Source: Klebsormidium nitens (taxonomy: Eukaryota > Plantae > Klebsormidiophyceae). From it: DNA of 64,000 nucleotides. Where the stretch lies: contig DF237319.1 of NCBI GenBank assembly GCA_000708835.1, positions 27,340 through 91,339 on the forward strand, read 5' to 3'. Below, piece after piece: positions 4,916 to 62,003 of the stretch. Under the pieces are notes generated by a model. It was not told where the DNA came from. It saw nothing but the letters and a program-made list of their open reading frames with translations, and searched no databases. Numbering within the stretch: position 1 is the stretch's first letter; each line of letters opens with the position of its first letter. A program made the translations under genes and the position numbers.

Positions 4916-13183
<8,268 letters not shown>

Positions 13184-38157: not shown

Positions 38158-38997
38158 CTACTTGTTCTTGGCCAGTGCCTGCTCCAGTTGTCTTAGCGCC
38201 GGCTTCAGGATGTTGAATGCAACCCAGCCTAGGGCGGGAGCCAGAACCAAGAGGAGGATGAGTGGTCGGGAATCAGTCCCCTCCGCCAGCTGAGCAAACT
38301 CCTGAGCGGCATCCGCTGATGACGGCCCTGCGAGAGCGGACGCCACCGCCCCCAACCCGATCGCCCCGATCACGCCCTTCTTGTTTGTCATTTTCTTGAA
38401 CTGGTTAAGAGCCGGCTGCAGGATGTTGAACAGCACCCAGCCAACCGCAGGCCCCAAGACAACCAAGAGGATCAGGGGCCGGTAGTCGGCACCCTCGGCC
38501 AGCTGTGCGAATTCCTGAGCGGCATCAGCAGAAGGGGCAGCGAACAGAGACGCAGCGGCGCCAAGCCCCAAGCCCCCGACAACAGCCTTTGCGCCCCGCA
38601 TTTTGTTGAACTGGTTGAGACCGGGCTGCAGGATGTTGAAGAGAACCCAGCCAATGGCAGCTGCTAGGGGGAAGAGCAGGAGGGCGGGACGAGCATCGGT
38701 TGCGATTGTCATGACTTCTTGGGCGGCGTGGGCGGAGGGAGAGGTGGCCAGCATAGAGAAGAGGCTGGCCGCAAGAGCAGTGCCTGCGGAGGCATGGAGA
38801 GACTCGCTGCTCACTGCGGGGGTGACAGCCCGGCACTCCTTAGTTTCTAGGGAGGCACGGACCCCAAACTTTGACACATTTCTCCTGGGGAGGACCACAG
38901 GCCTGACGGCGGCCTTTGAGGAGGCGCCGATGGCCGCTCCGCTCGACAGAGCGAGCTGCGAGAAGCAGACCTTTGACGCGGCGATGGTGGCAGCCAT
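38158..38997 (-). CDS. psbY: Photosystem II PsbY polyprotein precursor with three PsbY units, intronless
   Basis: Transit peptide (MAATIAASKVCFSQ...), then three D-x-RP...GWV(L/A)FNIL(Q/K)P(G/A)L(N/R)Q units, each preceded by a hydrophobic signal ending in an A-x-A site (SAHA, SADA, SADA). Confidence 0.95.
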   Translation of the reverse strand: MAATIAASKVCFSQLALSSGAAIGASSKAAVRPVVLPRRNVSKFGVRASLETKECRAVTPAVSSESLHASAGTALAASLFSMLATSPSAHAAQEVMTIATDARPALLLFPLAAAIGWVLFNILQPGLNQFNKMRGAKAVVGGLGLGAAASLFAAPSADAAQEFAQLAEGADYRPLILLVVLGPAVGWVLFNILQPALNQFKKMTNKKGVIGAIGLGAVASALAGPSSADAAQEFAQLAEGTDSRPLILLLVLAPALGWVAFNILKPALRQLEQALAKNK

Positions 38998-39743
38998 TGT
39001 GCTCTTCCAGACACACCTGACGACAGCAGAGGGCCGAAGGTGAGAGGAGGCACTTGGCGTGCGACAGGAATGCAATGGAGGGGCGCAGAGGGCAGATTCA
39101 GCACAATGCAGGGAACCACATTCGCTGGGAAGGTGGTCAGAGCACCAAATCCGTCTTCTCCAAAGACTTATACAGCTATCTCTGCTCGGACGATTCGATT
39201 TCGATACCGATCATGGCACTGAAATTTATCGGAATCGAAGGCTTGGGGTAAGTGATTACGCCTGCAAAAACCAGACAAAAAGCACATGCGATCCGAGGGC
39301 TCTCGGAACGTGTGGCTCTGAACGGACGGCGCAGAGGCGGATAGGAAATCCTGCCACACATCCGATTTGCATTCGTGTCTGCCAGAAACGAAAGTTCGGA
39401 AAGTTCCAGAGGGCCGGCAGTGGGCACCCTTGGTCGAACCCCCAACGACCTTCAAACTACTTTGGACGTCGACGTGCCTGCTAATGAATGCAAGCTGTAA
39501 CAAAAACTTCAAAGTTTCTGCACGAGTCTAGTTTGGCGTTTATCTAGTACCGTATTTTTTTCCTATACCCACGGTGGCGCTCTCGTACAATCGAACAGGA
39601 AGCTGCCTGGAGAAAGGAGGAGTCGTCCACCTTGCAGTGCGGTTTTGAATCGATGATCCCTCATTGCACTTGGTTGAGCTGGATTCAGGGTTTGTGGTTG
39701 ATGTTGGCTTGCTGGCGGTGGTGTAGGCTTCACCACTGTAGTT

Positions 39744-42700: not shown

Positions 42701-45700
42701 TCTCGAGAACCCTCTGACAGAAGTTCCGAATCTTGTTTTGCAATAAGGCCTACGTTGAAGTGCATCACTTCCGCCGGCTGGTAGATACTACATCAAACCC
42801 CCAAAAAAGTATATCACTCGGCCCCTGGGCAGTGATCTATTCAAAGTAGCGTAGTTTCACTGGAACATGATACGGACAACAATTCCTCTGACGGTTCTCT
42901 TTTTCTTACCGGAAGCCTTCTTGGAATGTCCAGGTATCGCATCGATGGCGCCGCTCTCCGAGAAGCCATGCAGTCCAGCGACCAAGCTCAGCCCTCCGAT
43001 TTCGCTCGCCGGAACGACCCTTCCGCCACCGGACGTCCGGAACACGATACAGTCGGACACGTGGCTGGCGTCCGAAAAGTTGCGGCGGAGCCTTTGGACG
43101 TGGTGGACATGCTGCAAAGCTGGACGGGTGCGCTGCAGGCGTCGCAACAACAGCTGCAGCAGGTGAGGGGCCCTTCTGCATTCCGTTTGTGCTCGAAGCA
43201 CCCCAGCCGTTGGGATTCTGCTTGGAGCTTTCCAGCCGTTGATTTGTTTTTCGAGCATCCCAGCCATTGGAGCCTTGATTGAAGCATCTAGCCGTCGGAT
43301 TGCATTCAGAGGTTCCCTGCCGTCGGATTTTGAGTGGAGCATCCCAGCCATCGGAGTGTGATCGAAGCATCCCAGCCCCCGAGGTGCAGTCAGAAAGTGG
43401 ACTATAATTGAGGCCCTCACGAGGCGTTTTTCCTTGGATCGATTTTCCGTGGTCCCGTCTACTAATGGTTCGTCGAAGATCAGGTGGGACTTGCGTGAAA
43501 CTCGTACGCTTTTGTTCAGCAGCTGCATGTGTTTCCAAGCGAGATCTTATATGTGTTGGGAGGCGGCGGTCTTCAGACGAGAATCGTTAAAGTCATCCCT
43601 TCAAGGATAGGTTTGTTCGTACTTTTTGCCCTAAACGCCAATACCGGCAGCTTGCGTAGACCGCTGACGACGATGCCAGGATCCGATTCATTTCCATCTT
43701 TTCTTTCATCTTCAGGTCAGGTGCATATTTGGAGCGGCCAAGCCTCTTCTGGATCACGCGTTCCAACCGTCGAAATGTCCGACCGTAATCCATCATCTCC
43801 TTCGACACTCCCTTTTTTCTATTATTTATTAGAAGACGCCAAAGCTCGTCTTCTCCAACCGGTCCGACATTGGAATCTCGTCGGTCTCTGCAGGGCAATG
43901 GCGTCGGTCCGATCATCAGCGACGGCGAGGGCAGTCACGGCCAAGCACTGGAGAATGCCCTGGCCGAGCACAAGAAGCACCTCGCAAATTTGCAGGCGAG
44001 AGCGCGCACTCTGCGCTTTTCTTTTTGAAAGGAGCAAACACCCGCACGCAAAAACTATCCCTAAAGAGAGTGGCGTAGACCTCATTAGCGTCAATATCCG
44101 TTAAGATTTTGTGCTTCGACGTGACTATCCTAAGGCACTTACTGCTACGACTTTCGTCCGTACCAAATATTTCTCCAGCCATGTGCACGAGGCTTCGCAT
44201 GTCCTCATGCCAGGTAACTTTGTGTGCCGGGGGAGCTTTTGGACTAGGGGCTTTGCAAATCCAATTGCAGCTTATGCATAAATCCGCGACAATCCATGAA
44301 GTTTTCTGCGGTGGAACGACGGTGGGATTGACTTTCGGTGCGTTTTGCAGGCTCTTGTTTCTGCCCTGAAAGAGCAGACACCGAAGTCGGAGAGCACCGT
44401 GGACCTTCTGCGGGAGCAAGTGGCAGAGGCCATGGCCGAGTCGTCGCAGGTAGGGGGGACTCCTTTCCTCTTTGAATCTGCTCGTTTTCGACTTCGTTAT
44501 ACATTCAGACCCCGGGCGAAAACCAGGGCAGAGAAGCAGACCTGTAGCTTTGGAGCAAGGTCGAAAGGCGGCGTAGGTTTCTTGCCATGTCGTGATTGAA
44601 GAAAGTGCTGTCGACGGGAGCGCGATTGTTGAACCCTTCTGTGAGTGCAACATAATGGGTTCGTCATGCGCTGATTCTTTATTAGGATGGAAAGGAAGAG
44701 AAGTGATTACGGCCCTCTTTTGTGCCCTCATCTCTCTGTTGCCGTGTCGATGAAATGATTCCCCATACATTGCTGCTCAAGTAGTGTCCTTTCCTTCTGG
44801 CCACAAGAACTGAAAATTGTTCGCTCGTTCAATTACCGCCCAAAATCGCCCAGGAGTCGCACGACGAGTCTGGTGCAATCCCGTCCCAACCTTTTCCCTT
44901 CTTGCAGGCGGGCGGTCCCCTAAGCGAACCCCCCTTCACTCCGGGTCGCAGACCGGGCGCACGCCTTCCGGACGAACGCTCCAAAAGCGCCCGGTTGCAG
45001 CTTGTACCGCCCACGCCTGCTATGAAGCTCGGGGGCAGACAGCCGTCGGGAAAAGTTGCTCCGGGCTCGCTGAGTTCCCTCGATGAAGCTGGTAATGACC
45101 AAGAGGACAAGGAGGCGAACGATTCGGAAGGGGCGAAAGGAAGGAGCCGGGTCGGGACTCGAATGCTCGGGAGCCTTTTCGAAAGCGAACCGGGCGCTTC
45201 AGGGAATCTGCAGAACGTCGACGAGTTGAGGCGTTCGATTCGGCATGCGGCGGCGGCCCGGCAGGAGGAGAGACACGTGGCAGCAGCTGCGCCGATGACA
45301 GCTGGCAGCCGCAACCAGCCGTTCGTGACCCCCGCCGCGGCGCTGCACAGCTTCAAAACCCCGCGCTTTGGAAGCGCGGTGACCGGTAGTTCGCGACCCG
45401 GGGTGGTGGCTCGGCTGGACATGGACAGGGGAGTGCCCGGAGGGAGAGCAACCGGGCAGTCTAGCGCAAGGGGCATGCCGCCGCCTAGAGACGTAACAAC
45501 CGGGCGGCTAAGAAACAGACCGGTGGGTTCAGCTCAGCCGCACCAGGAACTAGGTCGAGCGGGAAAAGCGCAGGTTTTGCGGAGAGATGAAAACGATGCC
45601 CGCAAAAACAGCAGTAGCATTGCGCTCGAATCCAGCGGGGCGCAAGCGGCTGAGAGCTTCCCGCAGCAGCGAGGGGGCCCAGCGTGGAGTTCTGCGGATG

Positions 45701-46478
45701 ATGACGTCATGTCCGAGCGGCCGAGGAGCGCCCCGTTCCGCCCCGCGGGTCAGCCGGTTGTTTCTCAAGCGGAGCACGGCTTCGACGAGGACCGGTCGTC
45801 CGAGTATTCGGGGTTAGACACCGGTTTAGGGCAAGGGTTAGATGACCGGGGCTTCGATGGCTCGGGTCGGAGGCCTCGGGAAAGCAGCGCGAGCCGGCAG
45901 TCGGTGTCCGGGTGGCCGCCAGAGCGCGTTTTGTCGCCGCCGCTGCAGTTGGAGGTGGATATGGCGGGAGATGACCCGGATGACATCTTCGATCTTCTAG
46001 GCGAGTTTCTTTCCACTTTTCTTGAGCAGACCGTGTTCTTGCTAGACAAGCAGATGCCTACATGGATGAAAGGGGTCACTCAAGACAAAACAATGCCGCT
46101 GGCTCCTGTTTTTTGCCGCCTGCTCCTATCTGCTGACAGTCATCTCCGTTCTCAAGAGAACGGAGATGACTCGAGCTGCCTTGAAACCAAATCGAAATCT
46201 GAAAGGGCAGAAACTTATTCGGATGCACCGCAGCCGTCCTTGAGCATGTGTCAATATAGACCTTCTTACTACTTTTGGACAGCGGTCCGGGTAGTGCACC
46301 CAAAAGCTGACCGGCTGCGGCGTCCCTATGCTGGTTGCTTCCTGCACTGAAAACTTAATAGACTTCGTCTGACTCAAATTTTCGGTTGTGCGCAGCTCCT
46401 CTGAAAGCTCAAGACCTGAACTTCTACAGTCCACGCGGCGCACAACAGACTGGGCGCTCGTCGCCCTCTGGTCCGTAG
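39744..46478 (+). CDS. AUG6: Augmin subunit 6 (HAUS6/AUG6)
   Basis: Exons 39744-39938, 40214-40270, 40421-40515, 40820-40970, 41263-41388, 41835-41982, 42308-42368, 42934-43162, 43894-43995, 44351-44449, 44908-46000, 46396-46478. Motifs [78 protein letters not shown]-terminal DLLAPL. Confidence 0.93.
43195..43378. repeat. ~28-29 bp minisatellite, about 7 copies, in AUG6 intron 8
   Basis: Recurring core gagcatcccagcc(g/a)t(c/t)gga with variable tails. Confidence 0.85.
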
Positions 46479-47572: not shown

Positions 47573-49780
47573 CTAGTTGACCATCCCTTCCTCCTTGTGC
47601 CCTGCGCACCGGCTCTTCCCCTTCTGATCCGCGTACTTGTACCGCGCCACCTTGGCACATCCCGCGACTTCGCACACAGCGGTCTTCATCTCCCACATGC
47701 CCGGAGCCTTGTGCACCGAACACGACTCAGGAACCAGCTTTGCCTTGCCCTCCTGCTTGCCGTATCGGGCTGGGTGACGGCAGCCCTCCACGTGGCACGG
47801 AAGCGGCCCTCGAATCAGGAACTTGCTCGTACGTTCGCCCCCTCCTTCCGTCTCTACATCGGCTTTCTTATCCCCAGGCTCAGCATAACCCCCGTTGAGC
47901 CGCTTTTCCATCGCCTTGTCCGCTTCTTTCTTCTGCCGTTTGCTTTCCTTCTCTCCATTCTCAGCGCCTTGCCGCCCGTTTTCCCCTCCCTCGTTTCCGT
48001 GTCTCGCTTCCTCCCCCCCCTTCCGTTTCACTCCACCGGTGGAATAAGCTGCGGGGGATCCCCCAGGCCCTGTAGTTGGTCGCCAGAAGCCCTGCCACCG
48101 CCCTTCAAAGTACTTGCCCCAAAAGTCAAACGGGGCCTCGTCCCTCCCTTTCTCCGCTGCCCCATCTGCCACTTTCTTCGCCTTGGCCTTTCCCTCGCCC
48201 TCCTTCTTGGCACCCGCTTTCTTCGCCCGCCGTTTGACGGGCTTCTCCTCTGCTCCCTCGACTTTACCAGACTCGACCTCAGCCCCTGACTCCGGCTCTC
48301 GCTTGCTGACATCAGCGCTCACGTCATCTGCTTGCGCGGGCCCGCCGCCTCCGGCTTCTGCCGCAGCAGGAGCTTTTGGTGGCTGCTCCGCTTCTTCCTT
48401 TCTCTTCTGCCCTTCCGTTACCTCGTTCTCCCCCTTGTTTTCTAGCTTGCCCCCCCCATCCTTTTTCTTCTTCCGCTTCTTCTCAGGCCGTCCTTCCCCT
48501 TCCGGCCCTCCCTCCTGTTCGACCCCTTTCTCCGCCGCTTTATCGCTTCCCTTCTGTTGTGACTGGTCAATGGCCAGCCTGCGGTCCTCCGCACCCCCCA
48601 GCGCCGCTCTTCCCCTTCCTCCGTCCTTCCCCTTGTCCTCCCGCTTGTCTCCTGCCTTTCCCTCCCCTTCCTTTTTGTCTCTCCGTTTCTCTGTCTTTTT
48701 GATCTTGCCCCCCCCTTCTTTGACCCCTTTCTCCGCTGTCATTTCTACCCCCGTTTGCTGGGTCTCATCAAGGGCAAAACTGCGACCCTCTGCTCCCCCC
48801 TGAATCGCCATTTCAGGTTCTTTTCTATCCTTTTTATCTTTGTGTTTTTCTGGCAGACCTTTTTGACTGGGAGGCGTTGCCCCGTTTTCAATGGGGCCTG
48901 TGGCTAGACCGTGTTCCTCTGTCCGCTCTCTCTTTTTCTTCTTCTTCTTGTGTTCCCTTGCGGCTTCGCCTGCCCGTGGAACAAGATAGAAAGAATCGAG
49001 TGAATGGCTGATTGTTTCAAGCTGGGGAAGCTTTGTGATCCTGGGCCATCAGCGAGTGAGGAAGAGAATCTGGCAATAAAGCACAACAAAGCTCAATGAA
49101 ACTGGACGGGTAAAAGCACGGGCTCAACAAGGGGTTTGAAGCAACATTTTCGGGTCTTGCTTAATTGCAGGAGGCGATTGAATTGTAGAAGCTGAAGTTG
49201 AGCAAGCAACGCCAGGATGAAGCCAGAGGGCGGGTCAGGGCTGCTGACGATCGAGCAATGCCGAATGTCAAAGCAGTTGTGCTGGGTGTGTACCAGAACT
49301 GACTGCAAAACGTGGGCAACCAGACTGAGTTCTTCAAGTTTCGATAGAGTCTGCTTCTGTGGATGTTTTAAGAGAGGGTCAAAGCTTAGGACGTGACTGG
49401 TAAAAGCGGGATAAAGCCTGCTGTAGAACCAACACAGGTAGTCCAGCTGGTAAAACGACAGCCTCTTACAAAAGGGCGGAAATGCAGAGTTACCTGACAG
49501 GGAGCTAAAGACAAAAGGTAGTCCCGAAAGCTCCTATTATTGGAAGGGAAGGACGCGAGTCACTCTCCTTTCAAAAGCCAAGTCTCGTCATGTGGTGAGT
49601 TTTCAAAACAAGCAACCATATTTTAAAAGACTACATCAAACTGCCAATTTCAGGGGCTTTGGGACGCTTACCTATGTCATTGGTCATCACATCCTGCCGC
49701 CTCTGCTCCGCCCCCACATCCTCCTTGCCCACACCCCCTTCGCCCCCAGATAATGCCAGGCTGTCTCGCTTCTTCCCCAT
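47573..49780 (-). CDS. EsV-1-7-like Cys/His-repeat protein, copy 1 (W-motif type, two repeats)
   Basis: Exon 49780-49672 (MGKKRD..., in-frame stop upstream, donor G|gtaagc) joins in phase 1 to exon 48969-47573. K/E/G-rich region with KKRKKKK, the motif FWGKYFEGRWQGFWR, then FLIRGPLP-C-x4-C...C-x2-HK-x2-GM twice. Confidence 0.75.
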
Positions 49781-51708
49781 CAGACTTCTCAAACTTTAGT
49801 AGTCTTGTTCCTTCTGTAGTCAGAGGTTCCTCTTATCAACTGGAACAAACCCTGATCGCAATGCCTTCCACGGAAGTCTGCATGGGGGAAGGTTTTGGTA
49901 AGAGACCAATGCATTACAAAGTCACCTCAGTGCCCCTTAACGGTTGTATTCACTGCAGAGAAATGACAAGGTGTGCCACCGTTCTGGCTGACAAATGCCG
50001 AGGAGGTAAAATGGAACTTGTCATAGATGGTGCAAGTTTCAAGGTCCGCAGGAAGGAATGCACTTGAGAGTCCACAACATAACCCATTTTTTACTTCTGA
50101 GATGCCACCCTGCTACTGGGTTCACGTAGAACCGCAGAGTCTCTCCTTCCAGGCATTCCTTTCAATGCCATCTTACCTGATATGTCCCGGGCATTGCTTA
50201 TAGACCATTCTACAAAGAAGCACAGGCATTCAAGTGGAGGGCAAAATAATCGCTTGCTGTTACTACACGAGTCATTGTGTTGACCCAAAAACCTGTGCAA
50301 AATGCCGCTCGCCTCTGAAATGCCTAGGCCCGTCGATCACAATGTGGCGAGATGCCTTGCGTCTCACTCCATGTCTAATGCAAACTTGTATTGGAGGGTC
50401 ACCAAATTGGGCGCCCTGCAGAGTGTGAGCAATGACACAGACACAAGCCAAGTAGCAGAAGGCCTTACTTACACCAAAGTCACGAACGACAGCCCTCCCT
50501 TCAGACGCCTCCTTTGTGCCCAATTGGAATTTGGAGCCTTCAAGTTCTGGATTGAGGCGCCAATTTCTTTGAACTTGCATGGACAATCCAACTTCCAAGT
50601 TTCAAGTTTCTGCAGTCCTTGCAAAAGGCTGCAAACTGACCGTCCTAGCTCACGTCTCTTCAACTTGACCAAAGCGGGTTCCAAGCGGGGTTTCGATGCG
50701 TTGTGCAGTGTACTGGTAGCACTCTACTGTGGTCTAGCTACAGCACGTTGTGTGCATGTAGGCCCTAGCCGGGGCGCTAGCCCACATTGAGGCTGGACTC
50801 TTGTTAAGGGAATCTCAACCGTAACCTGGTCCACTATAACCCGCTTTAAAGTGGCGTTCTTCTTGGACAAATGCAGCCTGCATGAGCAAAGCAAATGTCT
50901 GTTCCTTGAAGCTTTGAAAGCTTGGCTGGAGGAAGCACAGGATAAAACCCTCTCCCATTGTGCGTGGATTACTGTTCCGAGCAGCTGGAGATGGCGCAGC
51001 CTGTGCGGCAAGAAGTCTTCTTCGTCTTTGTCCCTGGGCGGAATGGGGAGGAGCATTGCCTCCCTTGCTTAGGAAAGCCTGAGGCTGATAATGTGCGCAG
51101 TCTGCGCAAGTCCATCGGGGTGAGAGGCCAAGCTTGTCATCTTTCTTGAGCCCAAACGCGCAGGAATCAAGGAAGATCAAGAATGCTGTTCTCCAGACAA
51201 GCTTTCTACCTAATGTGTCGTGGCGGGGTCAACGTGTTGTTGGTGTGCACCATTTGGCATGATCTTGAATGCGTTCTGGTTCCACACCACTATCTAGAGA
51301 TTATCCGCGCGATCAATGCTGAGACCACCATGTTATGAAGAGTCACTTTTCTCTTCAACTTCAATAAGTCCACAGTGGAGCAAGTGCCTGCAGAACATGA
51401 ACTGGGATCCAAGTGGCGCTTCATTGTTGTATGGCAGTTTAGCATCATACCATGCAGTCTGTATTGAGAACATGTGGCTAATGCTGGTTGGTGTGTGAGC
51501 TGCCAGCTCTCAATCCCATATGCTCAAAGACTCTAGTTCCACCTGCTAAACGTACTTCCTGTCATGCTTCTGTCACTTGGACAGTTTCTTACCGCGTTCA
51601 ACAGACTGCTCCCTGTCCAGGGCTTCAACTCAAGAGGTCATAAAAGTTTTCAGAATCATCTGTCTTGAGGATGCACTTACATGTGACCCGTCCCTTTCCC
51701 CTTTGCAG

Positions 51709-54052
51709 AAAAAAGCACGTTCGGCTGGCGCTCTTGCAAGAAGCCACCGCGTCAGCGCCCTCAAATTGGTCTTTGCAGACCAGCTTGCAGTAGAACTGGT
51801 CAACAGCGAACCTCTCACGGTCCTGACAACGATCTTTCAGAACACTTCTGGAGAGCAGTGGCGCAGGCTAGGAAGCGGAGTCCAGCCTAGGCTTGTTGCA
51901 GTTGTGAAAGAAAAAGGCGTGCAGACTCCAGAGACGAGGGGGCCACCGACACAGACAGACCAGGCGGTGCAGACTCCGGTGAGGGACACTGAAGGGCCAG
52001 TCCGGAGACCAGAGAAGAGGCAGCGCGAGGAGCGTGTCAGTGCGTGTGATGGAGGTGAGGTTCCATGAGCTGTGTATAGGCTGCCCCCCTTTAATGAAAG
52101 ACTGTGTTCATATTCAAAGATCCTCTAATGAAGCGAAGTTGCGGGGTCCGTTCTCAGAGTCGGCTTCACTGCAGTCATGACGCAGCTATCACAAGGAGGA
52201 ACTTTTTCTCATAGTCCAGAATGGTTTGTGAAGGTTTCTGTTCAGATATGCGTTTGGGGATATCTGAACTTCTTAGCCACTTGTCAAATCTGAACCAGTG
52301 GGCCCATGCGTTTTGCTTCCAGAGAAAGAACGAGACAGCGCTTGAAATCCTGAGTTATCGGCTGCTGCTTCCCTCAATTCGTGCTGCAGTGATGAATCAA
52401 GTCTTGCGGTGCCAGAAGAGCTGCCTTGCGATTGATTAAGATTGTCACAACTTTGTTGCATGTCACTTCTGAGCAGCAACTCTCAATACGAAATCGTTTT
52501 AAGAATGACGGACGATCAAGGTGGCTGACCTGCCTGATCATTTCCGCTATTGTCAGGTCCCCAGGCGAAGCGGCCGAAGTCAACAGGTGCTGACATCAGC
52601 GGCAAGGCAAACCAGGAGGGCGCACCACGAGAAAGCAGACCCAATGATGCTAGTCAGGAGCGAGACGGGCGGAACACGGAGAGCGGGGATGGCGTTGGGG
52701 GGCGCGAAGCGCAGAGACGGTCTGTGGGCAACACCAGCGGAGCTGCGGCAAGCAATCTTGCCGCTGGGGTCGAGGGAGCGAAGCCGGATATCAAGCGGAA
52801 GACAGTGAAGAAGGTGAAGATTGAATTGAGCGAGTCGTCAGAGAGTGAGCATCCAAGCAGGGCGGAAGGTGGGCGGGGGGGCAGTGACGTGGCTGGAGAG
52901 CCGCAGCAGCCGCCCGGGAAAGCTCCGAACGAAGCGAGGGCGCCGGAGGGACGGTCAGGACGTGCTCGTGATGTTCAATCGGATTGCGGCGTTCTGAAAC
53001 AAGAGGAGGGAGTCGAACGAAGGGGAGTGGTCCGAGGTGAGGGGCCAAAGGTTGACAAAGGTGGTGGCCGAGGGATTGGAGGGGGTGCGAGCCGGGAGCC
53101 AAAGCGTCCGGAGGCGGCGGTCTCGCATGTGCGAACGAAGGAGATGGAACCGGAAGGTTCTGAGGTGGATGCGGACGCATGTGACGAGTGCGGCAATGAG
53201 GAGAACCCGGAGTTATTAGTGCGCTGCGCCGAGGCAGAGTGTGCCACTGTTGCGCATATCTACTGCATAAGCGAGGAGATGGACGAGGTCCCAGGGGCAG
53301 ATTGGTTCTGTGATGGATGTGAGGAACGGAATGAGGCGGACAAAACGGGGGGGCACCAGGAAACAACTTCGGCGAGACGGGGTGTAAAAAGAGGCGAGGC
53401 TGAATCTGTTGAACGATTGGGCCAGAGACGGACAATATTTCGAGATGGAAGAGGTGGCGGCCGAGGGGAAGACGTGCAGCGGAATGGAGGGGGGTCGATC
53501 CACGGGAAGGTTGCACGGGGCGGGAGTGGCGTGCAGGGTGCGAAACGAAAGGCATATCTCATCGGCGGACCCCCAACTTGCCAGCATGAAGGTTGTGGGC
53601 GACGAGCTTGGTACACTCTTCGTGGTGACGGAGTATACCCTCGAGTCTGCCACAGCCACAAGTTACAAGGGATGGTGCAGAAGACTGGTTCAACATGCGA
53701 GATTCTCAATTGTCAGCAGGGAGCAGGCTACAACTTTCCGGGTCAGAAAGGAAGGCGTCGCTGTGGGAAGCACAAAGAGGAGGGAATGTTCACGCTGTCG
53801 TCCCTGTGCGAGGTTTCGGGCTGCCATTGTGTGGCTAGTTATCGAAGCAGCGAGGGCCAAAGATTTACCCGTTGCTCCCTACACAAAGTAAAAGGGACCA
53901 TGATCCCCGCTCGTCGATGTAAACAACCTGGCTGTTTAGTTACGGGCCATTACGGGTATGCAGGAAGGGGCAGAGAATTCTGCAAGGAGCACTCAGCAAG
54001 AGGAATGGTGCACCATCCACTTGTAAAACGGGGTCCAAAACGGAGAAGGTAA
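51709..54052 (+). CDS. PHD finger plus four EsV-1-7-like repeats, copy 2 (start exon unresolved)
   Basis: Exon 51709-52054 joins in phase 1 to exon 52557-54052. C4HC3 PHD CDEC...C-x4-C...H-x2-C...WFCDGC at 53180-53320, followed by four C-x4-C-x(~15-18)-C-x2-H repeats ending near HK-x2-GM. Confidence 0.85.
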
Positions 54053-57000
54053 TCCAAAGTCATGTCCTACGCCTTCAACGTCACGAACCTGGAATGACAA
54101 CTGACAATCTGATGTACAGCTTTTTGGAATCCGAAAGGGGCATATTGGCGGCAGCAAGTTTTTGTTTCTCTACAAATGCTTCAGATCTCCTCAGGCATTG
54201 TTTTCTGACTACCAGTATATGTTGAAATATGTGCAAGATTAGGCAAACTCGCATCCTGCTGCCAGCGGTCCATATCCAAGTTCTAAGAATTTTGGCAGCC
54301 GTTTAGATGCTCATGTGCAATAATGTTGCAGATAAATTATCATGAGGCCGGGTCATTAAGCTTGCGACTCAGACATTCGTCTATCACCCGCGCGTACGCA
54401 TTCAGCTCAAGACTCGAACCGTTCGAGTCACGCCGGGTTTCGATCAACCAGTATAGGAATAGCACATGTCCGGCCCGCGGCTGGCAACCATGCATGCATG
54501 CATATAGGCGCTATATAGCCGTCACTTATATATGAACAATCATTTGAAGATGGCTCAATTCACGCACGCACGGCACGTCGAGTTGTATAGATTGTCCATG
54601 GCCATTTGCCATGTGCCAGGCTAGGTGCACCTAGCTGGCAGTGACCATCACATGCACATGCTTAATTCGATGCAATGATGGCCCGGTCATTCCTTTGTCA
54701 GTCAAGGAAACGACTTGGCTTATAAACAAACAGCGCGGGTAGATCATTGTGCACATGTTTGCAATACGGTCACGCATGTCACGCGCGGCCCAACTCAACA
54801 CAATTGTTTGCTGATTGAACGAGCTGCAAGCCCTAGCGGCAAGGCCGGCATCGTTGGCTGGGGTTGGCACGTTCAATATCTAGGTCTATGTACTTCACTG
54901 CCTAAGCAGCTATGCATGTTTCGCCCTGGAAGCTCCTCAAAGCTGCCGCTCGAAGGCAGATGGACAGGCCATGCATCTGGCAAGCGACGAACAAATGGTT
55001 GACAACAGTAAATAAGGAAGGTGACTGGCCTGCCGAAACCAATAATATGTGCTGCAGTGCATTCAATCTCCTCGACCTCTGCGGACGTTGGAATTCGCTC
55101 GCTTAGCGTTCGCTTAGGCCCGAGCATGAAGAAGCGCCAGGATCACGACCTGTGTCCAAAGTTTCTCTAGCCCGGATGGAGAACAAGTAACTCAGTGCTG
55201 CTCGTTCTATGATCACACCGACTTCCCCGTGTTTACATTGTAATCTGCGGAAGGCGGATTCGCTGCAAAAAGCTATAGAAACGGGTCTTCCTAGGCTTGG
55301 AAATCTTGGCGTCCAATCTTGCAGATACTCTAGGCACGCACTTCGGGCCTCAGCCTAGCTTTAAAAGGAACTCTGAGCTGAGTCCAAAAGCTGAAGCTGG
55401 TGATGGTGAGAAGAAAATGTGCTTCCAACTTCCCAACGCCGGAAATCCTGCTGATCAGGCCGGAACACTCTGTAAGCAAGCGGCTAATCTTCAGATCGCC
55501 CTTCCCTTGCAAGCGGATGGAGAATGCGACGCTTACAATGGCGAGGATGGTCGAGACTGTCCCCCTACAGAGGCCGAGCGAAGAGCCTAACGTTCTTGTA
55601 TCGGCTTTGCTACTTCATTTGCAGAACTGCAAGGAACGTAATCTGATTAAGACTCTCTTGGGTCGATCAAATGCCCAGCGTGAAGCTAAGAAGGTAGTTT
55701 GCGCGACTTGCCAGCAGAAGGCTTCACCTCCCATACAACCGACACTCAGTGACCTCAGGAAACGAAAACATTGTTGTGGCCATCTGACAAAGTGGCCACC
55801 CGACTACACGGAAATATGATGGGGCGTTTTGAGGGGACAATGGGTGAAAGTGGTTTCAACAATACTGAAGGAGGCATGTTAGGCAAGCGCCTTTGACCTG
55901 TTCTGACTTCCCAAGGCCAGCGAATACCAGGTCGCTTCGCTGCCTTGTCCACAAATTCATCTGTAGCGGAGAGACATGCACTGCATCTCCAGAGAGCTCG
56001 CTAGTCCCTGAGCGCCAGAGCTGTCCGCGTCGACATTACGGCTGGACCGATCCGCAACATACCGTTTTAGTCTCTGTCTCGTCAGCACCTTCAGAACACC
56101 CAAGCAGCCAATGCCCACAGAACAGAGGTGATTCAATCAGAGCCAGTTTCTTCCAAAGTTATGCCCGAGCTTTTGTCCCTTACCTCTATCTGCCTTGGTC
56201 CATGCGAGACCCTTGCCGGCGAAGCCTTCGACCGGCGTTCTCTCCTCTCTTTTTCTACCGTCTCCCCAAGCCGCCAGGGGCCCGGGCGTCCGATGTGGAC
56301 CGCTCAGCGGCGTTCACGGATCCTGCGTCAGATCCTGCACAGCAGAGTTCTAGTCAGGACTCATCCCTGGAGCGCGACCACCCGTTTGGACGTCCGAAGT
56401 GCAGGCCTCGAGGAGTTTTGCCAGGACGTAGCTCGGAGTCCGAGCTCCGGACGGTCACCACTTTCGAGCAAGGAGCAGGAACAGTGCTCAAAATCGAGCT
56501 CAACTGAGGCTTTCTGTTGGGTCATTCGCAACGGAAGTGTCGAGAAATCCACTTCTGGGTTGTTCGACCCAATCGTCCGTACAATGACCTCAGAGGGGCA
56601 GCTAGGATTGTGAGAAAGGCGAAAACATGTGAGAAGGTCCCGAAAAGTAAGATTGATGGACACAGCAGTCTCAGACATCGCAACCGTGATAGTCTGAGGT
56701 CCACAAAGAAAGATCAACGGACACAACCGCCCCCACACGTGACAAGCTCTGCTCGTGAGTCAATCCGAAGGATGTCAACTTGTCGCGGAGGTCTCTAATT
56801 TTTGCTCATGCGCACTTTCTCTTGGGCATTACAAGCTCGTAGAAGCACCAGGACTAAGAAGCTTACCCAGGAAACGAGGCATGTGAACTTCTTATATGAT
56901 GTGGCGAGAGCAAACATGCAGAATTACTTATTGCAGCGGTAAAACGATGCTCCAGACGCTGGTAATGCGATGCTTGAAAGCGGAGGCATCAAGCCCCCAA

Positions 57001-57116
57001 GAGGAAGGTAAGACAAAGAGACAAACTTGAGAGAAACTGCAGCTCAATTTTAGGCACAACTCGCTCGAAAGCTCACAAGGCCTCACCTGAGCCTCCTCCC
57101 GGCCAAAGTACCCGAG

Positions 57117-57878
57117 TCACGCCCACTGCATCCCTTGTTCTTTATGCTGGGTACAAAATCGAAGCCTCTTGCCGCACCCAACAAAACCCCACCTGGCACG
57201 GATGGAGCAGTGCTCTACTTCGCAAAGGGGCCTATTACTGACCATCCCCTCTTGTTTGTGGGCTCCGCACCTTGTGGCTTTCTGCCCGCGCATAATCGTG
57301 AAGCTGGATTCCTTGCCGCAGCCCCTCACTTCGCACAAACCAGCGACACCGACCATCCCCGGTTCTCTATGTGCGCCACAACGGACTCTGCCCTTCCAAC
57401 TGTTGAAATTAAAGCTTGCTGTAAGTTTGCAGCCCAGGACTTCGCAGATTGCACCGCTTTGAAACTCCATCCCGAACGACTTGTGTTTGCTGCAAGCTTC
57501 GGGAAAGACCGTCTTCCCTGGCTGCTTGACACCATACCATGCTCTCTTTCCGCACCCTGGCTGACAGCACTTCGGCGGGCCGCGGATAACGAACCCGTTC
57601 GGCCCTCGCCCCCCCCTCTCCCCATCTCTAGTTCTTCCCCCGTGCCTCCCCTTCTTGCACTCGCCACACAGCCAGGCGCCAGTTGGCATCTCGTCCATCT
57701 CCTCTCCGCAGCAATACACGTGCACGGTCGTAGCGCACCCCGCCCCCGCACACCGCAGCAATAACTCCGGGTTCTCCGCACTGCCGCAGTCGTCGCACAA
57801 GTCGGCATCGTCCTCAGAATCCGAAGCGAGACTCCCGGCGCCACTGCCCCTCTGCACACGCGACCCCGCCGAGTACAT
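57117..57878 (-). CDS. PHD finger plus four EsV-1-7-like repeats, copy 3 (compact single-exon ORF)
   Basis: 253-aa ORF. PHD CDDCGSAENPELLLRCAGAGCATTVHVYC...WLCGEC (57797-57657) is clearly paralogous to that of copy 2; FVIRGPPKC is followed by four repeats. Confidence 0.85.
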   Translation of the reverse strand: MYSAGSRVQRGSGAGSLASDSEDDADLCDDCGSAENPELLLRCAGAGCATTVHVYCCGEEMDEMPTGAWLCGECKKGRHGGRTRDGERGGRGPNGFVIRGPPKCCQPGCGKRAWYGVKQPGKTVFPEACSKHKSFGMEFQSGAICEVLGCKLTASFNFNSWKGRVRCGAHREPGMVGVAGLCEVRGCGKESSFTIMRGQKATRCGAHKQEGMVSNRPLCEVEHCSIRARWGFVGCGKRLRFCTQHKEQGMQWA

Positions 57879-57900
57879 ATAAAGGCCTTGATGCTGATCA

Positions 57901-57942
57901 ACACGTGACGTCAGAGCGTCGCACGTGTAGCAGACGTCACGC
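57901..57942. promoter_or_regulatory. Cluster of ACGT elements (G-box/C-box-like) just upstream of the copy 3 ATG
   Basis: acacgtgacgtcagagcgtcgcacgtgtagcagacgtcacgc contains two CACGTG, one TGACGTCA and one GACGTCA within 42 bp. Function is inferred only. Confidence 0.4.
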
Positions 57943-60181
57943 TAATCTCGTTTGATACATGACTACCGCCACCGTATTGGTCACTGCACTGGCAATTTGA
58001 AGTGAGGGACTGCGATGGCACATGTGACTGATCAAGGTTGTGGCAAAAAACAGATTGTCGCAGGTCCAATGGTTGCGCCAATCATGATCATTCATCATCT
58101 ATAGTCCAGTCAGGTGCCATGGGATGATCCTCAGAGAGTCTACCATGAGCCTCACAGAATCACGCTGTATGCATTCGTGCAGAGTTCTGCTTGACATGAC
58201 TGGCTGCGCGGCAAAGCCAGCTGGATGAGTCGGTTTTGGCGGATGTCCATGGCATGATGATGATCTGTGCACTGCTTCAGTGAGGCAGATCGACAAAGCT
58301 CCGACTCAAGAGGGTACGGTCTCAATTCTGCTGCGACGTTCGATGCCAGGACAGGAACTGGTGCACAGTCTGAACGTTAGACAAGGTTGCCGGCCGGGCA
58401 TATAAGGTTACCGCCCGGCATATTGTCATATGGGCTCGCCCAATCAATGCCTTACCGAGCCCCATTCCATCATTGGCCCCGTTTGCGGTCTCCCGAAGCA
58501 TCTTCCCCCAGTCCTGGAAAAGCGTCAAGTTCCCAACACCAATTCCAAGTCGACACGATGCATGATGGCATATGATCTGCGACGCCCGGCTGCGCCGGAT
58601 GAGACTCGCAGGCCCGATGACTACATCCGATCTGCAACTTAACGCTACAATCTCTCCACCTGGCCGGCTGGATCACGGTCAAGACCCGTCCCTAGCGCCT
58701 CCCAAACCACGACCTCGTGTCCATACGTCAGGCCGATTTCCATATCTGTTGCCCACCATTCCCTTCTCCATTTTGGATCTGGCGTCCGCTTCAGACTCTG
58801 AGGGCGCCCAAAGGACCAAGGTTCGGGCGGGCCGCTGGGCGGTTTGGGTTCTGGGATTCTGGCCGCCGCGGCCAGCCGATATCGTGCTGTCAACCACGAT
58901 CTAGTAAGGCAGGACTCGCATCCGTTGAGGGATTTAGAACTCGCATGCCCTGGTTCAGTTGTACTGGTTATCAAGCCGGAAGTAATTCGGTTGAACCGCT
59001 TTCAGGCCGGTCCGCTCCGGCGACCGGCCGCCTTGCTGCACCGGCTTTGTGGTCGCCGCTGACGAGCACGCAGGGGTTTGGCCTGGCGCAGGGCCCTTGC
59101 CAACAGTTCGCTCAATCTGGCCGCGGGCCGAGCCTTGACGTAGAGCGCTGGCAGCGTCAATATAAGTCGACCGAGATGAAGGGCGACGCTTCAGATTCAT
59201 GGCCGGACACGACTTGTTGAATAGGCGGGGCCTCTGGCACCGCTCTCGCTTTCAACTCGCTTCTGCAGAATGCGCAAAGATCGTGCGAGCTGTTGTAACT
59301 CATGTAGGACCGAATGGATGACTTGCTTTTCTGCATGGAAATTTATCAGACAGCATTGTTTTCTCAACAGTGTTTTATTGAGGTACTTGCACCAGCGACG
59401 GCCAGGCTTTTGAATTGGAGATGATCGTGAGACGGATATAGTATTCCTACAACTACGAAAGCGAAAGTTAAAATTTCAGAGGCGGACAACGCGATGCGAG
59501 GTGACGAGGTTTTCAATCAATTCGCCAGATATTTTTCAGAGCCAGACTAAGTGGAATTACCCACTCGATGACCCAAGCGTGCACAACGCACTAAAGTTCG
59601 ATGGTGCATATGCAAGGACGGTTGCAAAGATAACGATCGCGACTGCGTGTAATCCGGCGTTCGCAGAAAGCTCTTGATGGTGGGCACTTAATGCAGAATC
59701 CATGTCTCGCCGTCAGCATGCTCGCGAATTAAATCTGAAAGCTAGCAAACTTTTGCCAATTTGCAATGCAGAATGCCATTGCGTATATATCGGATATATG
59801 CGATTTGAATATGAACTCCGGCCGCTCTCAGCAGGACAGCAGCGTCCGATCTGGACGTTTTCACATGGAAGTATAATCTCCAGAATTTCCAAGAGTTTGT
59901 AGCAAAACGCAAAGTCGCAAAGTCGGATCGGGCGTGATCGGACCTAGCGTCACCCTGCCGTCGTCCAGTCACTGGAGAATCCAATAATAAGGAATCTCAG
60001 CTTGAGAATATTGCCCGAAAATCGAATTGGCAGCGCCGTGGATTTGACGCTTGTCTGCAGCCAAGTCAAAAGCCAGTGCGAGACATGCGCCAATGTACCG
60101 ACAAATGACGCTCTCAATTGTGAAATTCCCCTATACGCAAGCTTGACGGCCTCAGGCCTCGAACCTGCTCACTACCACACC

Positions 60182-62003
60182 TTACACCATCGAGTCCGTC
60201 TTGTGCTTCGTACAGAAGCTCTTGGCCTCATCCTGATGTCCAAAGCGGGCCCGCCGAGCGCAGCCTTCATTTTCGCAAAGCTTGTATATATTCACCATGC
60301 CAGCCTCTGCGTGCGCTTTGCACCGCGTCACTTTGCGGCCCCGGCCTTCGGTGAAGCTTGCTACCAGGCGGCATCCGCTGATCTGACACAGCCTGTTAAT
60401 GCTCTCGACATGCCGGCCTCTCGGTGTCGCGCGCACCTGCTCCTTGTCTTCTTTCCTGGAAAGTCGTAATCCGCACAGGTTGTGCAACCTTGTACCTCAC
60501 AGATATCATGTTTTTGCATCTCCATGCCTGGTAGCTTATGTGCGTTGCACACTTCTGGCACGAGCCGCCTCCTCTCTTTCCTGAAAGCATAACGGGCATG
60601 CCCGGAGCACCTCTGCTGGGAGCACGGCAGGGGTCCGCGAATGACGAAGCTAGACCCCAGGGTTACGTGCCTTCCTGCCTCCCCTTCCCCTGACTGAGCT
60701 TGTTGGCCTTGAGCCACTTTTGCACGTACCGCAGAATCCGTCCGACCCCCGGCGCCTGTCGGACTGCTGGATTCTTTCTTGACCCGCTTTTCCTGCTGTC
60801 CCCTTCGGCCCTTCCTGCTCTGCATCTCGGTTGCTATCCCCTTTTCCAAGAACGAAACTCTTTGCTGCCCCGGGCCCCTCCAGAACCTCTGCCACCGCGC
60901 CTCAAAATATGCACCCCACCCATCGTACAAAGACAGCTGGCATGCATTCTGTACTACCCTCCCTGATCCTAGTTTTTCGGTCGCTGCTGCTTTTGCGCCC
61001 GTCCTTTCTGGCTGACCTGCGCCCCCCATTTGCGTCTCTCCTCTCTGATCGGCAGTCCCATCACAGGCTACCGGCCTCTTTCTCCCGGTCTTCTGCTTTG
61101 AGACCCCGCTTTGCTGGCCGCCTTCCTCTGACCGCTGAGGAAACTCTCCATCGGCCTCTGCCTTTGCGCTCTTGGTCCCGCTCGCTTTCCCTTCCACTCT
61201 CTCTTCCTCTACATCGTTTTCCTCGTTGCGGTGACCTCTTTTCTTTCGCTTCTGGTTCGGACTCCCCTCCGCCCAATTCTCACCAAACTCTTGCTTTGCA
61301 TCCTGCCTTTTCCCCGCATCCTCCCCACCCCTCTCCTTCCTCTTCTTCCGCTTGGCATGGACTGGAGCCATGCCTTCCGAACTCTTGCCTTCCGCAGCAC
61401 TCTGGAATGCTGACTGGCCTTCGTCGACTTTTTGGCTGCCTTGAACCCCGTCGCGACTCTGATGTGCATCGGCCTTGAGGGTCTTCGGGGCTTGGAGGTC
61501 AGAAACTTCCTGGCTTTGGTGCTGCTGCTTCTTTCCCTTCTTGCGCTTCCGAGGAGCCTCGTAGACTTCTGCATATGAACATAGAGCCAGGATCGAGGAC
61601 AGAGCAGAGGAAATCTTAAGGTTGATCTCACCCAAGAAATCTTGAATTAAGTAATGTGCACTCAATAGACCCAAGCTGCATTAGGCAATGCCCTAGGTGA
61701 TTGGGTTTGTTGGAACCCCAGTTATGCTACTACTAAGATACTAGGGGAGCTTTGCGCGATGCTGCTAAGGTGGCAAGCAAAGAATTCTAGAGAGGTCGTC
61801 GAGAAGCTGTCTGAAAGAGAAAAAGAATGCTAGTACCAACTCTTAAGTATGCAAAAGGAAGATGGACCGTCCGGTAAAGTCTGAGGGGCGGAGTCAACCA
61901 AAGGTGGTTCAACACAGTGACCACATTTTGCAATTGAGACTTGCTTACCTTCTGGGTTCATGCTATCATCATTCTGCCTCTTCCTCTTCTTCCTTTTCTC
62001 CAT
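60182..62003 (-). pseudogene. EsV-1-7-like repeat protein, copy 4 (W-motif type, four repeats), frameshifted after repeat 2 (pseudogene or sequence error)
   Basis: Exon 62003-61949 (MEKRKKRKR..., donor G|gtaagc) joins in phase 1 to an exon starting at 61568. Motif GWGAYFEARWQRFWR, then FVIRGPLPC and two repeats. A missing base near 60409 (ATGTCGAG rather than ATGGTCGAG) shifts repeats 3-4 into ORF 60182-60487. Confidence 0.75.

Follow-up and report, generated by a model that had tools for sequence, protein, structure and literature searches.

Four EsV-1-7 repeat genes at one locus of Klebsormidium nitens

The stretch analysed here, referred to as the window, comprises 64 kb of nuclear DNA from Klebsormidium nitens and contains a cluster of four paralogous genes, c1 to c4, which encode proteins with tandem EsV-1-7 cysteine/histidine repeats. 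The genes are located at positions 47573-62003 of the window on strands -, +, - and -. The cluster had been proposed from the DNA letters and a list of open reading frames (ORFs), prior to any database search (the original prediction), and its four paralogous ORFs were recovered from that list at the same positions. Protein searches revealed that c1 corresponds to KFL_003700120 (P0002) and c2 to KFL_003700130 (P0004), both with 100% identity to the K. nitens proteins. A brown-algal origin of the window is rejected by the identity of c1. These two models and a third one at the locus, KFL_003700140, are all annotated as "hypothetical" in the public database. Word-based protein searches with c1, c2 and c3 returned matches solely from K. 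nitens and one related species and are uninformative on distant relatives. All exons, as well as both pieces of c4, were analysed separately and not as joined sequence.

The repeats had been likened to the EsV-1-7 motif, and this assignment is confirmed by Pfam: the family PF19114 (EsV_1_7_cys) is matched with 40 bits in c1, 71.5 bits in c2, 83.5 bits in c3, and 38.5 and 61.2 bits in the two reading frames of c4 (frames A and B), all above the gathering score of 25 bits, and a shape search against the Atlas agrees. c1 contains 2 repeats, c2 and c3 contain 4 repeats each and c4 contains 2+2. A six-frame scan of the window with the strict pattern C-x4-C-x(10-24)-C-x2-H-x(2-3)-G[MTLIV] yielded 13 matches, all within the four genes, compared to 0-1 matches in 20 shuffles; a 14th, degenerate unit is located at the end of c4, resulting in a total of 14 units. 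The tandem Cys-x4-Cys...Cys-x2-His units have a period of around 37 to 41 amino acids, and in an alignment of 61 sequences including family members, their Cys and His positions show little or no variation. Each array is opened by the leader (F/Y)(L/V)I(R/G)GP-x2-C, which is indeed common to all four copies, as had been noticed at the outset. The arrays are strongly basic, with an isoelectric point (pI) of 9.3-9.6 and a net charge of +6 to +16, and inspection of the sequences revealed several K/R clusters of the classical nuclear localization signal (NLS) kind in every one of the four proteins. The four-repeat array is predicted by AlphaFold2 (AF2) to fold confidently (mean predicted local distance difference test score (pLDDT) of 92, predicted template modelling score of 0.66), and its nearest shapes in the Atlas are all PF19114 clusters, which derive from Chlorophyta and Nucleocytoviricota. 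A sequence search of the array against the PDB gave no match, weak hits to BANP (E 0.03) being taken as chance. A weak Pfam match to Zf_WRKY19 (E 0.1) was dismissed.

Two domain architectures

c2 and c3 possess a PHD finger upstream of the repeats, as predicted. The Pfam family PF00628 is matched with 25.1 bits in c2 and 24.4 bits in c3, just above its cut-off of 24 bits, and scores of 27-32 bits were obtained for the related proteins P0014, P0015 and P0116. The Cys4-His-Cys3 spacing is canonical, with a Trp located two residues before the seventh Cys; however, the third and fourth Cys are arranged as C-x4-C, in contrast to the usual C-x2-C of PHD fingers. The ligands C28, C31, C43, C48, H53, C56, C71 and C74 as well as W69 do not vary among c2, c3 and the orthologues of both, and the corresponding regular expression matches the window only at the c2 and c3 sites. 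A profile search against solved structures identified the PHD finger of BAZ2A as best match (E 2e-6), followed by those of ATXR5, BAZ2B, DPF2, KDM5A (PHD1), PHF21A/BHC80 and AIRE (E up to 0.1). The PHD fingers of these proteins bind the unmodified N-terminal tail of histone H3. With the fingers of c2 and c3, they have in common the Cys4-His-Cys3 ligands, the Trp and an N-terminal edge of acidic character, whereas none of the proteins contains EsV-1-7 repeats. The Klebsormidium finger is strongly acidic (pI 4.1). An Atlas feature search with c3 returned generic PHD clusters only, with scores below 0.8.

The last large exon of c2 encodes, in this order, an NLS-like PQAKRPK motif, a disordered region, the PHD finger (53180-53320), a linker, the four repeats (53579-54007) and the basic tail KRGPKRRR. 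Exons 1 and 2, which were overlooked in the original prediction, encode a conserved N-terminal domain (N-domain) of around 115 amino acids, followed by the first part of the disordered region. For the N-domain, AF2 yields a model with a mean pLDDT of 85 and the element order E-E-H-E-E-H-E (beta-beta-alpha-beta-beta-alpha-beta), as in the beta-grasp fold. In Foldseek, all 50 top ranks are taken by ubiquitin, SUMO, NEDD8 or RA/RBD domains, with modest E-values of 3e-3 to 1e-2 and template modelling (TM) scores by query of 0.33-0.54, and similar domains (RA and PB1 clusters) were matched in the Atlas. In its predicted topology, the N-domain is similar to ubiquitin-like interaction domains such as RA/RBD, PB1 and the N-terminal domain of TDP-43, and its matches include ubiquitin, NEDD8 and the RA domains of RalGDS and Rgl2. 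No sequence similarity to these could be detected, and Pfam gave no match at E <= 10; the N-domain thus resembles a ubiquitin-like beta-grasp domain at the fold level only. The same N-domain heads KFL_004750060, a third K. nitens protein with a PHD finger and four EsV-1-7 repeats, which is encoded on another scaffold.

In c1 and c4, a conserved Trp-rich motif takes the place of the PHD finger, again as predicted, and this motif occurs exactly twice in the window. The Trp-motif regions and the N-terminal regions gave no Pfam match at E <= 10. In c1, the large exon encodes a K/E-rich stretch of low complexity that contains NLS-like clusters, followed by the Trp-rich motif, a linker and two repeats (47582-47797). 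Frame A of c4 encodes NLS-like clusters, the Trp-rich motif and repeats 1-2 (60409-60624) and stops at 60361.

Judged by their sequences, the four proteins fall into two classes. Class A comprises c2 and, ancestrally, c3, and combines a predicted N-terminal ubiquitin-like domain and an NLS-rich disordered region with an acidic PHD finger, which is connected via a linker to four basic, putative Cys3His EsV-1-7 modules. Class B comprises c1 and c4, in which a basic N-terminus and a K/E-rich disordered region precede the strictly conserved Trp motif; a linker then leads to two to four EsV-1-7 modules. The identity of the cluster and the domain architecture described here can be regarded as almost certain.

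Conservation and duplication history

The same four genes are present, with order and orientation kept, on a 23-kb Logan contig (L001) of a related species. The orthologous proteins share 64-69% identity. Comparison of the window with the L001 orthologues revealed an omega of 0.03 for the Trp motif, 0.13-0.26 for the PHD finger and 0.19-0.49 for the EsV arrays, but about 1 for the linkers; the domains are under purifying selection and the linkers are neutral. Within the cluster, c1 and c4 are collinear paralogues with 33% identity over 323 amino acids, and c2 and c3 are about 38% identical. In a phylogenetic tree, c2 and c3 each group with their own orthologue, and the duplications are therefore older than the speciation. 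The proposed local duplication into two architectural classes is thus borne out by synteny and tree, and it predates the split from the related species. The notion of "swappable modules", which was also put forward, is overstated: the classes are old and collinear within each class, and recent module exchange was not seen.

Gene structure and expression

Contigs from four of four sequencing runs, which belong to four studies, have the c2 intron spliced out; since the contigs span this intron in spliced form, the runs represent RNA. For c2, the RNA contigs include the 3'-terminal part of exon 2 (51901-52052), extend a further 464-708 contig bases upstream of the aligned stretch and place the 3' end of the transcript at around 54150-54175. 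c2 and the repeat-coding part of c3 are transcribed and spliced. That none of the copies might be expressed had been named as an outcome that would speak against the original prediction; transcription and splicing of c2 in four studies argue otherwise. A phase-1 intron precedes the large last exon in c1, c2 and c4, as seen from spliced RNA contigs for c2 and from exon translations compared with the public proteins for c1 and c4. The claim that three copies share this intron thus holds for c1, c2 and c4, while c3 has no such intron. The features of the four genes are listed in Table 1.

Table 1. Coordinates of the features of the EsV-1-7 cluster in the window
Feature	Position	Strand	Evidence
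c1 ORF	47573-48811	-	ORF list
c1 last large exon	47573-48969	-	100% match to P0002; exon compared with public model
c1 Trp-rich motif FDFWGKYFEGRWQGFWR	48080-48130	-	Motif scan
c1 phase-1 intron	48970-49671	-	Donor G/GTAAGC, acceptor CAG/GC
c1 first coding exon (MGKKRDSL...MTNDI plus 1 base)	49672-49780	-	Translation is a substring of P0002
c2 exon 1	50991-51119	+	Translation matches P0004
c2 exon 2	51709-52054	+	Translation matches P0004
c2 phase-1 intron, GT..AG	52055-52556	+	Joint 52052->55 to 52555->57 in spliced contigs
c2 ORF	52550-54052	+	ORF list
c2 last large exon	52557-54052	+	ORF, Pfam, RNA contigs, P0004
c3 3' untranslated region	55000-57116	-	RNA contigs
c3 ORF	57117-57878	-	ORF list
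c3 four EsV-1-7 repeats	57129-57569	-	Pfam, motif scan
c3 PHD finger	57657-57797	-	Pfam, regular expression
c4 ORF, plus piece in another frame	60361-61674, plus 60182-60487	-	ORF list
c4 frame B, repeats 3-4	60182-60412	-	Pfam; stop-free
c4 large exon, frame A	60361-61568	-	ORF, Pfam, exon check
c4 Trp-rich motif YDGWGAYFEARWQRFWR	60877-60927	-	Motif scan
c4 phase-1 intron	61569-61948	-	Exon translations compared with P0018
c4 first coding exon (MEKRKKRKRQNDDSMNPE plus 1 base)	61949-62003	-	Matches N-terminus of P0018

The spacer between the divergently transcribed genes c1 and c2 contains a block of around 900 bp (49599-50516), which is 71% identical to L001:15378-16284. This is above the expectation for a spacer, and the block may contain a shared promoter, a 5' untranslated region (UTR) or an unrecognised exon. 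Outside the cluster, an ORF of 305 amino acids at 38158-39075 (-) encodes a PsbY polyprotein with three PsbY units (PF06298, E 1e-42); a nuclear gene of this kind is typical of the green lineage. The largest ORF outside the cluster (44902-46350, +, 482 amino acids) has no Pfam match at E <= 0.01.

Distribution of the PHD fusion and comparison with known EsV-1-7 proteins

A profile of the PHD finger and the four repeats was searched in 1.84 billion representative proteins and matched 4584 of them at E <= 1e-3. The domain content was determined for the best 150 of these 4584 matches, seven of which contain the PHD fusion: three K. nitens gene models, the two L001 orthologues and two proteins from metagenomes of the Joint Genome Institute (JGI). 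The remaining matches among the best 150 contain the repeats only, the median being about 8 units, compared to 2-4 repeats in the Klebsormidium cluster. One of the metagenome proteins, P0014, has 696 amino acids with a PHD finger and four EsV-1-7 repeats and is encoded on a eukaryotic contig (L002:10001-12091 and L003:4024-6114; JGI metagenomes 3300060284 and 3300060285), where its gene adjoins sphingolipid desaturase fragments. The second one, P0015, shares this domain content, has 407 amino acids and is encoded on a eukaryotic contig of 3 kb. None of the papers searched describes a PHD finger combined with EsV-1-7 repeats, or links Klebsormidium or PHD fingers with the EsV-1-7 repeat. The original prediction, which was unaware of a description of this architecture, is in line with this result.

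According to published reports, neither animals nor land plants possess the EsV-1-7 family, and it is expanded in brown algae, whose EsV-1-7 genes tend to form tandem arrays; the repeat is presumed to represent a new class of zinc finger. The brown-algal proteins, including IMMEDIATE UPRIGHT (IMM) of Ectocarpus (Macaisne et al. 2017, as cited in later papers), belong to the same family (PF19114/IPR043822) as the Klebsormidium proteins and share with them the tandem Cys-x4-Cys...Cys-x2-His units and the tandem arrangement of the genes. In contrast to Klebsormidium, a streptophyte green alga, Ectocarpus is a stramenopile, and a 2026 preprint reports that none of the Ectocarpus EsV-1-7 genes encodes any other Pfam domain, whereas in Klebsormidium, the fusion partners of the repeats are a PHD finger with a predicted ubiquitin-like domain, or a Trp-rich motif. 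Novel here are the domain fusions in a streptophyte alga; the EsV-1-7 repeat family itself is already known.

A possible role in chromatin

The locus is a conserved tandem cluster of four nuclear genes, and its products are best explained, on balance, as putative zinc-dependent, chromatin-associated regulators; taken as a whole, this explanation is somewhat more probable than not. The proteins would be located in the nucleus, and each EsV-1-7 unit would bind zinc through its Cys3His ligands, as is presumed for the family. The basic EsV-1-7 array would then have a polyanion as its ligand, with DNA or RNA as the most likely candidates. In class A proteins, the PHD finger could anchor the protein on the N-terminal tail of histone H3; the nearest relatives of known structure recognise unmodified H3K4. 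The ubiquitin-like domain of class A and the Trp motif of class B may serve for the recruitment of partners or for self-association. A function as chromatin reader would be a reasonable inference, drawn from the PHD finger alone. The chromatin or nucleic-acid mechanism as such is tentative.

Several observations weigh against this explanation. The PHD fingers score only marginally above the Pfam cut-off. The comparison of the EsV array with solved structures by fold yielded only Foldseek matches with E > 1 and VIA Z-scores of at most 2.2, and thus no clue to a ligand; since arrays of small zinc modules are difficult to align, this is not read as evidence for a new fold. No biochemical role of the EsV-1-7 repeats is established, even for IMM of Ectocarpus. 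Furthermore, the RNA depth of c3 is 52-137 over 57086-57601, but only 0-19 over the PHD-coding part, contig depths being a crude measure of expression; the main c3 transcript may begin near 57600, and its product would lack the PHD finger. Finally, the reading frame of c4 breaks after repeat 2, just past ...RHREAGM, at around 60400-60409.

It was also considered whether the fusions provide "Rosetta-stone" evidence for EsV-1-7 repeats as chromatin- or nucleic-acid-binding zinc fingers. The two classes would then cooperate, one binding unmodified H3 tails via the PHD finger and the other docking via the Trp motif, and would share a target-recognition array acquired by exchange with giant viruses. 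This more far-reaching proposal is possible but doubtful.

A serious rival is that repeats and PHD finger have a purely protein-binding role, for example in an adaptor, a scaffold or an E3-ligase-like protein, and neither read chromatin nor bind nucleic acid. The predicted ubiquitin-like fold at the N-terminus would agree with this, as proteins of the ubiquitin pathway often contain ubiquitin-like domains as well as cross-brace fingers of the PHD-like and RING-like type. The only neighbours of the array, all of them very weak, are RING and IBR domains (RING of IDOL and BIRC7, Z 2.0-2.2; IBR of Parkin, E 1.9), and the function of the EsV-1-7 family is not established. However, these RING/IBR matches are at noise level, the sequence of the PHD finger is nearest to readers of histone tails and not to RING fingers, and the strongly basic arrays with the many NLS-like clusters fit nucleic-acid binding better. 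A solely protein-binding function is thus considered unlikely, and a chromatin-associated role is favoured.

Integrity of c3 and c4

The irregular structure of c3 and c4 raises the question of whether there is a four-gene system at this locus at all, or whether c3 and c4 are one gene or pseudogenes, with only c1 and c2 being real. The public model KFL_003700140 (P0018, 547 amino acids; 57567-62003, -) indeed joins both genes: it follows c4 down to 60436, then uses a small exon (58459-58509), a part of c3 and a frame-shifted tail. However, the RNA contigs are unbroken over 57086-57601, where the model places its last intron, and in the related species, c3 and c4 are separate genes 9.4 kb apart. 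KFL_003700140 is a chimera of c4 and c3. The c4 frameshift could also be taken as a sign of an artefact or a pseudogene, but the four repeats of the L001 orthologue share one frame, and the piece downstream of the break (frame B) is stop-free and conserved with an omega of 0.32 compared to this orthologue. The frameshift is thus judged to be either very recent or an assembly error.

In the case of c3, the very low RNA depth over the 5' part and the missing 5' exons would likewise speak for an artefact or a pseudogene. The L001 orthologue possesses ubiquitin-like exons upstream of the PHD part (L001:7757-7882 and 8504-8779), whereas a tblastn search with the N-domain found none upstream of c3 in the window. 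The gap between c4 and c3 is only 2.3 kb in the window and thus around 7 kb shorter than in L001, and a block of around 700 bp between the two genes is inverted (L001:1966-2670 compared to window 57886-58588). c3 of K. nitens therefore appears to have lost its 5' exons via a rearrangement. Nevertheless, c3 and the c4 piece past the frameshift are both free of stop codons and have an omega of 0.2-0.3. An annotation or assembly artefact is accordingly regarded as less likely still than a purely protein-binding role, and the reading as a four-gene cluster is retained, even though only c1 and c2 look like clean full-length genes in K. nitens. In L001, the c3 orthologue has its PHD part separated from a low-complexity ORF of 167 amino acids by a single in-frame TAG (L001:9944-9946), which may be located in an unrecognised intron or represent a lesion.

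The stop codon of c3 at 57117 is followed by a spliced 3' UTR. An intron (56334-57085) begins 31 nucleotides past the stop, alternative introns extend from 56183/4 to 55446, 55469 or 55626, and the last exon ends near 55000. The joints read CT..AC on the + strand and were found in four runs; contigs with retained introns are also present. The 3' UTR contains no sizeable ORFs and is not conserved in L001.

Relation to giant viruses

EsV-1-7 repeat proteins, which owe their name to ORF 7 of Ectocarpus siliculosus virus 1, occur frequently in giant viruses (Nucleocytoviricota). The viral proteins belong to the same repeat family as those of the cluster, and structural alignment of the predicted c3 array with viral PF19114 clusters gives TM scores by query of 0.36-0.50; in contrast to the viral genes, those of the cluster are intron-bearing, syntenic host genes. 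A scan of IMG/VR with the PHD and EsV profile gave 179 pattern matches, none of which was confirmed; the patterns were derived from the PHD part, and the scan is no test for viral EsV-1-7 repeats. The features expected of an endogenous giant-virus element, such as intron-poor genes, hallmark genes and foreign composition, were not found in the window, the hallmark search not being exhaustive, and the GC content around the cluster is host-like. The cluster is not a viral insertion because it consists of ordinary intron-bearing host genes in a syntenic block. The domestication of a virus-related repeat, as put forward in the original prediction, is not supported, the genes having spliceosomal introns and host neighbours. 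It is accordingly highly improbable that the cluster represents the decaying relic of a Nucleocytoviricota element that had integrated into the genome, and not a working host system: the abundance of EsV-1-7 proteins in these viruses (Atlas clusters, literature), the broken frame of c4 and the truncated 5' end of c3 would be in line with such a relic, but all four genes are located in ordinary nuclear DNA of host GC content with the PsbY polyprotein gene as a host neighbour, three of them have spliceosomal GT..AG phase-1 introns, synteny and purifying selection are seen in a second species, spliced transcripts are present in four studies, and the IMG/VR scan with the PHD-derived patterns revealed no viral contig with a PHD and EsV relative.

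Implications for the EsV-1-7 family

Klebsormidium is placed among the streptophyte algae, near the origin of land plants, and the EsV-1-7 family is hereby documented in the streptophyte lineage, though land plants have been reported to lack it. In brown algae, the family is among the most strongly expanded ones and includes the developmental regulator IMM, while the ligand of the repeat is not established. The domain context in Ectocarpus gives no functional clue, as no other Pfam domain is present; the Klebsormidium fusion is the first contextual clue. The fusion of the repeats to a PHD finger and a predicted ubiquitin-like domain is stable, conserved and under selection. With the c3 protein of 253 amino acids and the array of 158 amino acids (mean pLDDT 92), compact constructs are available for binding and structural work. 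The resulting hypothesis, that EsV-1-7 proteins of this type may be chromatin-associated zinc finger proteins whose PHD finger would read the H3 tail, is concrete and cheap to test.

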